A stretch of 64,000 nt of DNA from Bugula neritina (Eukaryota > Animalia > Bryozoa), in assembly GCA_964035545.1 (NCBI GenBank), contig OZ037770.1:2232001-2296000 (forward strand), written 5' to 3'. Made by a program: the position numbers and the translations under genes. The notes below the pieces were generated by a model. That model made no database searches, was not told the DNA's origin, and saw only the letters and a list, made by a program, of their open reading frames with translations. Within the stretch, counting starts at the first letter, position 1. Every line of letters begins with the position of its first letter. Positions 57,301 to 63,803 of this stretch are shown in pieces.

Positions 57301-60300
57301 TTTTACAATTGCATTAAAAGATAATGATGGCATACAGATATTACAGACAGTTAATAAAATGATGAAAATTATATGTATATATAATTCTACTGAAAGTTGT
57401 GCAGCCAATGTACCACAACTGTCGTGTTGTGTTTTCTTTCTACCAGTATCTCAACTGCATGGTGAATATCCATCTCTTATAGAAGTATTGTGAGATAAAA
57501 TCAAAGCTTTCTAAGCAGCAGTCCACCATAATCTCCTGAAATGCCAGGTCTATAATTATTGCTTCTATAATTAAGATGTTGACTTTAGACTCGATCTATT
57601 TGTAGACCTAGAGTTGTCACCTTATTAGATATGTCACCTTTAAGGTTGCAGATAAGGCTCACAAATCCTCTTTCCTGTGTGATGCTAAACGATGATATGA
57701 CTACATTAAGTGCTAGTTTTAGAGCTGCGCCGTGTGAGTAATTTTGACTTGTGCAAGTAACTAATTGCAAAAGAAGGTTGACTGTAACGCAGCAATTAAA
57801 CACCAGCCACTTCTAAAAAATTTCGCCTGAGCTTATTTTAGTTCCTTGAATTGCCTACAAATAATATTGGTTGCATCTCCGTGATACTATAGCTTTTAGC
57901 AGTATTTAAATCAGCGTGTGAAAATCTCAGTACTCACAAAACTTGTTAACATAAAAGTTGATAACCAATAATTACTAACATGCTATCATGTGATTCTTTA
58001 GTACTGCGCGTATTGAAATTGATTCCTTCAGTTTTTTTACTTAATGTGTAAATGAGAATTATCGTTTTTCATTTTCATTGATGGGGGTGAGTAAAGCTGC
58101 TAGCCTTTTTACATTATTTTTAGCGGTTACACTGTCAACTTCATTGGTCTGGTTCAAAAAAGTTAAACTTGCCAAGAAGCTCTATCTTAAATATATACCT
58201 TATAGTCAAACTGCAGTGGGTTCACTTTTGACTATCACGAATGTAGATGAAAAGAATCACAGATATCATGTTGCACAGTGCTATAGTTATTTATGCTTTT
58301 GCTATGACGACTTTTACCTCATTATAGGAATAGTAATTTACTGTGCTCAGCTTCCTATAATAAAATATACTAAGCAACTCCTGTAGCACACCACGCACCT
58401 GTAAGCTTTTTCCAACTACGATTGGCCAACATAACAATTGATGTCTGTGACAAAATGAGTAATTCAGAGCAACTGGTCTAGGAGTTAGAGTATTTGCCTA
58501 GCAATCACAATGTCAAGGGTTTAAATTCCAAAAAAAGCTATTGGTGATGTTAGGCTGAGCGTCTTGTCATAATTGCTCCTATGCCTCATTTAACTAATTC
58601 CTTAGCTCGCTTTAGCCAAAAACTTTTCAATCAAGGATGGCGACTATAAACTTGCGTGAGTTTTTTTCAAATGAAAAATGCAGCTAGTAATCATACTTAA
58701 ATGCTGAAGTAAAATAAATTTCAAATGCATGCAAGCACAAAAGCCTATACATCAGGTCAGTTTTGGTCCATATGTAAAAATAGAAAAAGATATTGCATTT
58801 GCTGTAGGGTAATCTGTCTGAGTGAGATTTATATGAGCAAATTGAGGGCGCCTTTGCTTGATTTGTGCCGTTGTAGATAAATAAAAAAGCATTTTAAATA
58901 TGCATAGATACTTACACTTAGAATCTGCATTGTACTTATGATGATGAAAAACAATTGCAATACGTATATGGCTCAATGTTAATTGGGTATTGATATTAGA
59001 GCATGACCTGCTAATTGTTGAAAGCTTTAAAAATATAGATTACTTTTTGAACTTAATTTATAAAGCTTACTGCATTTTGTGAAAAAAATAAATGTTTTTT
59101 AGACACTACTTAGATCAGCTTGTTGCTTTCTTGGATGTTGAAAAAAATAAACAAGTGAGTGATTATCGAGGGTATATAGCTGAGAAGGAGAAAAGGGAAC
59201 TAGAAGCAAAAGTTGAGAACGAGCAGCATAAAGCGCAAGAAGCTGAAGTGAAACTCAAAGAATCAGAAGAAGAAAAAGAAGAGCTGAAAGAAAAAAGAAA
59301 AGAACTGGAAGAAAAAGTTGTGCAAGAAAAAGAAAGAGCATTAGCAGCTGCTGCAGAAAAACAGGAAGCTGAAGCTAAGTTGCAGAAAACGGAAGCAATG
59401 AAAGAAGAACTTGAAGAAGAAAAGAAAATAATAGAGGCAGCAGCTGAACAGGAAAAAGCTAAAGCAGCAGAAGCAGCTGCAAGAGAAAAAGAAACTGCAG
59501 ATAAACTCCACTTCAAAGAACTGGAAGCAATAGCCGCTAAAACTGAACTGGAAGAAAAGAAAAACAAGGCCAACACACTTGAACAAGAAATTTCTCTGCT
59601 TAAAGAAAAAGAAAATGCAAGAAATCAAGAAATTGAAAGAGAGTTGATCACTTTAAGAGAGCAGGTAAATTTGATAAATATGTCTATTTCCCCGTTGTGT
59701 GCAAACCACACTGCCTATACCCTATATAACACAGGTGTGCCGCTAAAGCCTATTGCTTTAGGTGATAAGCAATGACCAAAGCAAACATTTAGAAAACTTA
59801 ATTTCAAAAGTAAAACATCACTGTTTTCATGGTTTTTATGCAAACAGTCTTTTATTGTGCTGATATTTTTATGATGCAACTATATATTATATGCAGTAAT
59901 TTTTGAATTTTATTGTATCTTTAAAAATGAAATAGCTATAACTTTTAAAACCAAAGTATGATATTTTAGATAAAAGAGAAAGATGCAGAGATTGCTGAAA
60001 AGATACAAGAAACTATGTTACTAAAAGAGAAGGTAAAAATCAATCAGTGACTGAATTATAAATGAAAAAAAAGAGAAATTACATATTTTCTATAAATACT
60101 TTATTAACCTTTATATTTTGGATAATTTATATAAAATAATTTTTTTAAATGAGTAGGAAAAGATGCTTTGCTATATTAGTTTGAAAATTTTACGCCTACT
60201 CAAAAGTTTTTTTTCAATATTTTCATTACCAAAATTTTCAATCAGAGCTTCAACAAAAAATTTTATTGAATTCCTATGGTATTACTATTAAAACTTTCAG

Positions 60301-63803: not shown

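Follow-up and report, generated by a model that had tools for sequence, protein, structure and literature searches.

The window -- the whole 64,000-nt stretch of Bugula neritina DNA analyzed here -- appears to carry a single long gene. Spanning about 32-35 kb, it would encode a lineage-specific member of the GBP/atlastin/RNF112 group of GTPases, a reading to which we give a probability of about 0.62. Behind the GTPase region lies a structural-period exon array: eleven tandem exons, each of 63 nt and all of phase 0-0. The coding order would be five GTPase exons, the middle-domain exons M1 and M2, exon U, the long exon A, the eleven 63-nt exons and a terminal exon T (Table 1). Homology searches were run exon by exon, and the junction codons were checked with local scripts. 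As read from the splice sites, the phase chain is unbroken from exon 5, which leaves 1 base, through M1, M2 and U, which leaves 2, to exon A. The GTPase exons lie 23 kb upstream of the array, on the same strand and linked to it by compatible splice phases, which favors the original prediction that the array sits on a GBP/atlastin-like GTPase, and we infer that the exons are spliced into one transcript; the interval from M2 to U may conceal further exons. Two retrotransposon insertions have been found in the stretch between the GTPase exons and the array.

Table 1. Exons of the putative array gene. Plain coordinates are positions in the 64,000-nt window; L002 and C6 coordinates lie beyond it.
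Feature	Position	Strand	Basis or remarks
Coding exon 1, with the start codon and the G1 P-loop (GxxRxGKS type)	36658..36855	+	Pfam GBP PF02263, E=0.0012
Coding exon 2, bearing the region of switch I (T-Q-G-I-W motif)	37453..37605	+	Match to RNF112 GTPase structure 9jju, E=0.0028
Coding exon 3: G3 region, D-I-Q-S	38264..38422	+	Acceptor tatag/ATT, donor GCG/gtaagt
Coding exon 4: putative G4 "RD" motif region	38674..38805	+	Conserved in P1, P2 and minus-strand neighbour
Coding exon 5: GTPase domain end, donor leaving 1 base	39041..39185	+	Pfam GBP positions 191-228, E=0.012
Middle-domain exon M1, opening with the 2 bases that complete the last codon of exon 5	46606..46718	+	Conserved with P1 and minus-strand neighbour; splice sites read
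Middle-domain exon M2, phase 0-0	46973..47101	+	Conserved with P1, P2 and minus-strand neighbour; splice sites read
Exon U, last before the tails; donor AAAAC/gtaagt leaving 2 bases	56178..56314	+	Fits acceptors of exons A and B
Exon A: 187 aa, 49% charged, E/K/A-rich predicted helix	59103..59664	+	Acceptor tag/A; donor CAG/gtaaat, phase 0
63-nt exon 1	59970..60032	+	AG/GT scan; counterpart L019:12190-12252 with splice sites, 13/21 aa identical
63-nt exon 2	60458..60520	+	AG/GT scan; two-exon block with exon 1, resembling exons 3 and 4
63-nt exon 3	61027..61089	+	AG/GT scan
63-nt exon 4	61739..61801	+	AG/GT scan; best match of second L019 exon (68% nt, 11/21 aa)
63-nt exon 5	62152..62214	+	AG/GT scan
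63-nt exon 6, sequence outlier	62476..62538	+	AG/GT scan
63-nt exon 7, kin to the young cluster of exons 9-11	62787..62849	+	AG/GT scan
63-nt exon 8, sequence outlier	63741..63803	+	AG/GT scan
Possible 42-nt exon between exons 8 and 9	L002:1378-1419		Beyond window
63-nt exon 9	L002:2360-2422 (G000:C6:2297360)		Beyond window
63-nt exon 10	L002:4288-4350 (G000:C6:2299288)		Beyond window
63-nt exon 11	L002:4635-4697 (G000:C6:2299635)		Beyond window
Terminal exon T: 50 aa, phase-0 acceptor, stop	L002:5351-5503		Beyond window
Candidate alternative tail exon B, predicted transmembrane anchor at end	L002:8009-8645		2.5 kb downstream of T; homologous to exon A

A mechanical scan recovers all eight of the 63-nt phase-0 exons that had been predicted in the window, each with an open frame and AG/GT flanks. 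The array had also been expected to run past the window, and it does: three further units follow there, and then a phase-0 terminal exon with a stop codon, so that the array comprises exactly 11 units. Every unit has a pyrimidine tract, a (t/c)ag acceptor and a gta donor; all 22 splice sites and 11 frames are intact, and the introns range from 248 to 1865 nt. A filter for open 63-nt AG..GT segments with hydrophobic residues at positions 1 and 18 plus 8 or 15, and with at least 35% charged residues, finds 11 exons in the array region, compared with 0.013 in Markov shuffles (maximum 1 of 300), and none in the rest of the plus strand or the whole minus strand of the window. A profile of the 21-aa unit matches only the array locus in 216 Mb.

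The hydrophobic pattern originally proposed, at positions 1, 8, 15 and 18, is occupied by L, I, V, M or F in 100%, 82%, 82% and 100% of cases, respectively (n=11 exons). Positions 1, 8 and 15 are the heptad a positions, while 18 is the sole hydrophobic d position, d positions 4 and 11 being mostly Lys; with just four of the six core positions in each unit hydrophobic and Lys at the other two d positions, a canonical dimeric coiled coil is no more than plausible. The surface positions are highly diverged, and what all units have in common is their length, phase, splice signals and heptad pattern. Since each unit encodes three heptads and is phase 0-0, any number of units preserves both frame and register; being a multiple of 3 nt and of 7 residues with phase-0 bounds, units could be gained or lost with neither disturbed.

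The assignment of the head to the GBP/atlastin/RNF112 group draws on several weak, co-linear exon-level matches. The P-loop of exon 1, G-E-M-R-T-G-K-S, matches Pfam GBP positions 18-43 and aligns to the atlastin P-loop; atlastins are also its top matches, though weak ones, in a PDB search. This exon is 72-73% identical to its counterparts in two paralogues, here called P1 and P2, and ends in a phase-0 donor, AAG/gtaagt. Exon 2, also conserved in P1 and P2, aligns to residues 77-110 of 9jju, the RNF112 GTPase structure (PMC12012479), with T-x-G-I-W-M kept. The A-R-D-F of exon 4 is invariant among the paralogues, and this exon's weak profile match to residues 185-206 of atlastin-3 falls short of significance (E about 0.5). 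No significant match came from profile searches of the PDB with exons 3 and 4, or from Pfam scans run separately on M1, M2, U, T and B. Taken singly, exons 1 and 5 score 18.5 and 15.3 bits against Pfam GBP, below the 21.1 cut-off, but a genome scan with the neighbours in frame gives 22 bits for exon 1, above the cut-off, and 28.4 bits for P2. The G3 motif DxxG is absent from exon 3, which has D-I-Q-S at the position where P1 and P2 have D-I-Q-G; with this glycine replaced the head may not be a normal GTPase. Membership in the GBP fold family would stand despite the replacement, while normal catalysis is in doubt.

The helix predicted from exon A could be a coiled coil or a single alpha-helix, but resembles a charged single helix more. 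The exon begins in mid-codon and needs just the 2 bases that U leaves over. Between it and its counterpart in the other B. neritina assembly, identity is 83% and dN/dS is 0.22. When exon A was compared with the protein databases (a HMMER scan of 1.84 billion representatives, plus a word search), the only matches were single-exon ORF calls plus one hypothetical protein of B. neritina that is mis-modelled; the latter, a gene model of the published draft, omits the micro-exons, and gene models for the B. neritina genome are likely to miss such exons more generally.

Direct reading gives the last heptads of A, the 63-nt units and the first heptads of T a common register. Exon T continues with three further in-register heptads; a break rich in Gly follows, and then a short amphipathic helix. 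In contig L021, from a diverged lineage, the exon has the same acceptor and is about 90% nt identical, versus about 75% for its flanks. Because A ends and T begins in the register of the array, the tail would form a continuous helical rod. At the standard rise per residue each 63-nt exon would add about 3.1 nm to it, and the whole array about 34 nm. We also infer the inclusion of all units, a coiled-coil state and a tether or spacer function.

Three features appear here as new finds: a second tail exon, B, a U-B join in relatives, and, in one relative, an A-T join lacking the array. The acceptor phase of exon B is that of exon A, compatible with the donor of U. Just before its stop codon, over residues 192-210 of 211, the Kyte-Doolittle 19-residue mean reaches 2.39; this single hydrophobic segment at the extreme C-terminus marks it as a putative tail anchor. 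Exon B is 88-89% conserved at the nucleotide level in contigs L021 and L022, with a dN/dS of 0.59, and its hydrophobic segment is nearly invariant in L021 and P0004. Since it fits the same upstream donor as A, it is a probable alternative tail, and the gene probably has two isoforms: a long, soluble U-A-array-T form and a short, tail-anchored U-B form. In one relative (L023) a B-type exon immediately follows a U-like one, the phases being the same, and another (L020) has exon A joined straight to T; a U-like exon is also found in a paralogue at C6:1819190. Elsewhere in the genome, exons A and B have no copy but one partial inverted one, and exon B could itself be a relic.

The same exon order as in the array gene is seen in P1, P2 and a minus-strand neighbour. 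P1 and P2, which belong to the same family and lie upstream on the same chromosome, at 100 kb and 197 kb, carry arrays of 42-nt (two-heptad) exons behind the same GTPase, with the shared layout of a GTPase followed by phase-0 exons of whole heptads. The array described here differs from theirs in its unit of 63 nt, or three heptads, and in its consensus, with Lys at positions 4 and 11; further features that set its gene apart are the long charged exon A and the spare tail-anchor exon B. Among the relatives, the number of 63-nt units is 0, at least 2, or 11, while others use 42-nt units. In one contig, L019, exon 1 and one further unit keep their length and splice sites at about 15-18% nt divergence; past these two exons come a dispersed repeat of roughly 170 nt and then a counterpart of the distal 42-nt tail of P2. 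L019 (draft assembly GCA_010799875.2) was rejected as a cross-lineage exon count, since it resembles an assembly chimera, or else a rearrangement that could not be told from one. Two scans of metagenome contigs found no further orthologous array exons.

Tandem duplication, both of individual exons and of a block of two, would have built the array. It stands out clearly in exons 7 and 9-11 (60-79% nt) and in blocks 1-2 and 3-4. In leave-one-out profiles, homology to the other units is clear only for exons 2, 7, 9, 10 and 11 and marginal for 1, 3 and 5, and none was detectable for exons 4, 6 and 8. The idea that the 63-nt unit derives from exon T (its 5' end) or from exon A (its 3' end) was rejected, the profile scores lying below those of shuffled controls. 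These duplications, together with the relatives that have 0, at least 2 or 11 units, or units of 42 nt, bear out the earlier proposal that the length of the rod can change by exon duplication, and the range among relatives argues that the rod is modular on an evolutionary scale. The suggestion that the module is a diversifying one fares differently: dN/dS among the array exons is about 0.2-0.85 and below 1 in every computable comparison, which indicates relaxed purifying selection and lends that suggestion no support. An immune or a ruler role for the module is speculative.

One possibility, raised in the earlier proposal, is that the 63-nt exons are cassettes, individually skippable and used in combination to give rods of graded length and varied surface. 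Their phase 0-0 bounds and whole heptads would keep any subset in frame and in register, the divergence of their surface positions would suit such a use, and there are relatives that lack the array between A and T; but strong acceptors and gta donors flank every one of the 11 units, none of the sites being obviously weak, and the dN/dS values below 1 give no sign of selection for diversity, so that we hold cassette use to be doubtful. Going further, the tail might be a switchable, length-adjustable tether, in which alternative 3' processing picks U-B or U-A-array-T while combinatorial skipping sets the reach of the GTPase head in 3-nm steps and varies the surface -- a strategy that would be family-wide because the paralogues do likewise with 42-nt units. 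This we regard as unlikely.

That the array lies outside the GTPase gene altogether, either as a separate coiled-coil gene or as a decaying, unexpressed relic of duplications, is quite improbable. The 23 kb and the two retrotransposon insertions that intervene would accord with it, as would the gene model of the other assembly, which leaves the array exons unused. It would, however, strand exon A, which starts in mid-codon and needs the 2 bases of U, and no start exon was seen; a relic is hard to square with 11 frames and 22 splice sites all intact, with exon 1 and one other unit preserved in the lineage at about 15-18% nt divergence, and with a T conserved above its flanks, and P1 and P2 have the same GTPase-then-array layout. 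A mutually exclusive cluster of the Dscam type, with one of the eleven exons in each transcript as an alternative version of the same three heptads, is most improbable: although equal length, equal phase and a common structural pattern are its classic marks, no docking/selector complementarity above shuffled controls was found for the first or last intron versus the others, nor any conserved intronic motif, introns of 248-1865 nt rule out steric exclusion, no homology to the rest is detectable for exons 4, 6 and 8, and the frame does not prevent the inclusion of several units.

The preferred reading, of a single GTPase gene with a rod-forming exon array, can be set beside several known systems. 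With the GBP/atlastin/RNF112 large GTPases (dynamin superfamily, PF02263) the predicted protein shares the Arg-bearing GxxRxGKS P-loop, the T-x-G-I-W switch I, a putative RD motif and a helical region behind the GTPase, and exon B offers a membrane anchor, as in atlastin and RNF112. It departs from them in the replaced G3 Gly (DIQS), in a short middle domain with no GBP_C by Pfam, and in a tail that would consist of a very long charged helix and the exon array, lacking a CaaX box. The Dscam1 mutually exclusive clusters consist of tandem, equal-length, same-phase exons; the Bugula units have all three properties, but no docking/selector signal was found in their array and some are not homologous to the rest. 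The micro-exon genes (MEGs) of schistosomes encode small secreted proteins, consist nearly entirely of micro-exons of varied length and show documented exon skipping. The likeness is that in both cases a gene from a lophotrochozoan strings together very short symmetric exons whose omission would leave the reading frame intact, while the Bugula exons are uniform in length, appear to code for a regular helix, and belong to a large, presumably cytosolic enzyme.

The fibrillar collagens have phase-0 arrays of 54-bp exons, each encoding 6 Gly-X-Y triplets, that came from tandem exon duplication. In both cases exon length is a multiple of the structural period -- three heptads in Bugula -- and gain or loss of an exon spares frame and structure; the Bugula array differs in being much smaller and lineage-specific, and in apparently encoding an alpha-helical rod on an intracellular GTPase, not a triple helix in an extracellular matrix protein. 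Should the splicing be confirmed, the family would offer a clean alpha-helical parallel to the 54-bp exon rule of collagen, with exon size locked to the structural period and a rod that evolves, and is perhaps spliced, in whole structural steps. The two unit sizes, 42 and 63 nt, in neighbouring paralogues make this a natural system for the co-evolution of exon size, phase and protein periodicity, and one that bears on how rod length matters to a dynamin-superfamily GTPase.

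When the sequence was scanned mechanically for 63-nt open frames bounded by AG and GT, all eight of the 63-nt exons first reported in the window were recovered at the same coordinates. The original prediction that the array continues further was also borne out: downstream sequence supplied three more units and, after the last of them, a terminal exon (T) whose stop would be the C-terminus that extending the window had been proposed to find. All 11 units have a pyrimidine tract with a (t/c)ag acceptor and a gta donor, and the array introns range from 248 to 1865 nt. The hydrophobic recurrence noted at positions 1, 8, 15 and 18 holds over the full set, with L, I, V, M or F in 100%, 82%, 82% and 100% of units, respectively; Lys predominates at positions 4 and 11 and Glu at position 7. 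A filter combining exon length, an open frame, splice dinucleotides, charge and the hydrophobic pattern passed 11 units, as against 0.013 in Markov-shuffled sequence, and none were seen elsewhere in the window (the other 59 kb of the plus strand and the whole minus strand). A permissive local hmmsearch found no additional unit between 56 and 76 kb, and an eleven-unit profile searched against the whole genome (216,009,554 bases, 321 contigs) matched at the array locus only; the Darwin Tree of Life assembly of Bugula neritina, tzBugNeri2.1, comprises 216.00 Mb in 320 scaffolds plus the mitochondrion, with 9 chromosomes (PMC11480708). Leave-one-out profiles recognised homology clearly only in units 2, 7, 9, 10 and 11, detected units 1, 3 and 5 marginally and units 4, 6 and 8 not at all, so the array is old and heterogeneous; what its units have in common is their length and phase, their splice signals and the heptad pattern. 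The K-D-A-E-I of unit 1 recurs in a possible extra 42-nt exon. A test for Dscam-like docking/selector pairing was negative for the array. Intron 3 of the array contains, at 61240-61369, a near-perfect hairpin (63-nt arms, 98% complementary, 4-nt loop) that resembles a foldback or MITE-like insertion and lies between long microsatellites of the (AT)n and (TA)n types, and the intron after unit 7 holds a 33-nt tandem repeat (62892-62966; 2.3 copies, 97% identical).

Features of the 63-nt-array gene (window coordinates unless a contig is named; L002 is the sequence continuing downstream of the window)
Feature	Position	Strand	Evidence or context
Exon 1, start codon and GxxRxGKS P-loop	36658-36855	+	Pfam GBP, E=0.0012
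G3 motif, exon 3	38282-38293		D-I-Q-S
Middle-domain exon M1	46606-46718	+	paralogue comparison
Middle-domain exon M2	46973-47101	+	paralogue comparison
Exon U, last before the tails	56178-56314	+	paralogue comparison
Exon A, long charged helical exon	59103-59664		donor CAG/gtaaat, phase 0, immediately ahead of unit 1
Three further units	65360, 67288, 67635 (window-equivalent)		downstream extension
Possible extra 42-nt exon	L002:1378-1419		between units 8 and 9; good splice sites
Terminal exon T	L002:5351-5503		after unit 11; acceptor tatag/GTG, phase 0, 50 codons and stop
Exon B, second tail exon	L002:8009-8645 = G000:C6:2303009-2303645		2.5 kb beyond T; transmembrane anchor at end

That the array belongs to a GBP/atlastin/RNF112-like GTPase gene, much as originally proposed, is well supported by the exon phases and by co-linearity with paralogues, the family matches themselves being weak and at exon level. 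Exon 1 with its neighbours scores 22 bits in a genome scan, above the cut-off, and its best PDB matches are atlastins. For the switch I exon the match is to 9jju, an RNF112 GTPase structure (E=0.0028); after it come the G3 exon, an RD-motif exon and the final GTPase exon, which aligns to Pfam GBP positions 191-228 (E=0.012). The first four junctions, between the GTPase exons, are phase 0; exon 5 leaves one base and M1 gives two, M1-M2 and M2-U are phase 0, and U leaves two bases to which exon A adds the third, the phase chain being unbroken from exon 5 through A. Both upstream paralogues have D-I-Q-G at the G3 motif, and the loss of the DxxG glycine suggests that the head of the 63-nt-array copy is altered or inactive. 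The window background is about 30% G+C; blocks of 50-60% G+C at 26000-36000, 41500-45700 and 49400-55700, within introns of the host gene, are Ty3/gypsy-type elements with reverse transcriptase and integrase ORFs. On unplaced contigs, strong single-stretch GBP-domain matches (C208:24413-25147 and C191:9224-10018; E=6e-54) are broken by numerous TAA and TAG codons in frame, which would fit a contaminant or epibiont with a ciliate-type genetic code rather than the bryozoan.

Charged residues make up 49% of exon A, and no more than about 25-50% of the putative core positions are hydrophobic; it may form a charged single alpha-helix instead of a classical coiled coil. In the array units, four of six core positions are hydrophobic. 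Counted back from position 1 of unit 1, the end of exon A has Leu at -4 and -7 and Ile at -11, in the same heptad register as the units, while T opens with V1, L8, L11, A15 and F18 before a Gly-rich stretch and a Phe-rich amphipathic helix. The standard helical rise is about 0.148 nm per residue; each unit would add some 3.1 nm and the whole array some 34 nm.

Exon B shares 43% identity and its acceptor phase with exon A, and its C-terminal segment is strongly hydrophobic (Kyte-Doolittle 19-residue mean 2.39) up to the stop. Reading from the array into B is blocked, as the array ends in phase 0 and the frame would meet a stop after two codons; B is phase-compatible only with U. A related animal is represented by metagenome contig L023, which has a U-type exon, about 850 nt and then a B-type exon, with identical phases; this argues that the U-B junction is genuine and probably ancestral. 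The gene would thus be predicted to yield a long soluble product, U-A-array-T, and a short tail-anchored one, U-B. Exon B could instead be a relic. Its dN/dS is 0.59 and its hydrophobic tail almost invariant, and in contigs L021 (from a diverged lineage) and L022 its nucleotide identity is 88-89%, against 75-79% for the flanks. T is about 90% identical in nucleotides in L021 with its acceptor unchanged, and in another relative (L020) an A-type exon ending in the same donor is separated by about 960 nt, free of array units, from a T-type exon whose acceptor is phase 0.

Nucleotide identity is 76-79% among units 9-11, 60-69% between these and unit 7, 61% between units 1 and 3 and 57% between units 2 and 4. 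The pairing of 1 with 3 and 2 with 4, together with a single exon pair matching both blocks in a contig of draft assembly GCA_010799875.2 (L019), points to duplication of a two-exon block. Modularity of the proposed rod is therefore supported on an evolutionary scale, by unit and block duplication and by relatives with other layouts. The suggestion of a diversifying module was not: the between-lineage dN/dS of exon A is 0.22, unit 1 has 0.41 and paralogous units 0.17-0.85, values that point, at low statistical power, to relaxed purifying selection. L019, which encodes hypothetical protein EB796_007249, shows about 82% nucleotide identity to the array locus across exon A and unit 1; past its second 63-nt exon come a dispersed repeat of about 170 nt and then the counterpart of the distal tail of P2, an upstream paralogue. 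That junction is a likely misassembly, and the contig was rejected as an exon count; the gene model there leaves out the micro-exons, exon A being read past its donor. The repeat (L019:12722-12890) is SINE-like and occurs in at least 40 places in the chromosome-level assembly, in copies 77-83% identical to that of L019. Exon A queries of protein databases found no transcript-derived protein, and two scans of metagenome contigs found no further orthologous array exons.

Two regions further upstream, at distances of 100 kb and 197 kb, each hold at least 17-21 charged phase-0 exons of 42 nt that pass filtering, on the minus strand, and none of 63 nt; the GTPase exons there share 52-73% identity with those of the 63-nt-array gene and keep the same order, and another paralogue lies at C6:1.81 Mb. 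With 42-nt arrays on co-linear paralogues, the gene fits into a local family that builds its tails from heptad-sized exons, and represents the 63-nt version. Downstream on the minus strand (about C6:2307000-2314000) lies a convergent paralogue that may be a pseudogene; it has exon-4-, exon-5-, M1-, M2- and U-like exons in the same order, with stops in the U-like match, and downstream of it, at about C6:2307002-2307064, is one 63-nt exon ending L-R-E-Q. The only A/B-type exon elsewhere in the genome is a partial inverted copy of exon A (C6:2321597-2321836, minus strand; residues 94-187, 78% amino acid identity, one stop, REQ/gt donor kept), with no 63-nt array beside it. New at the 63-nt-array gene are the three-heptad unit and what looks like a choice of two endings, soluble rod or tail anchor; the principle itself, an array of exons with structural-period units, is already known from collagen-type exon arrays.
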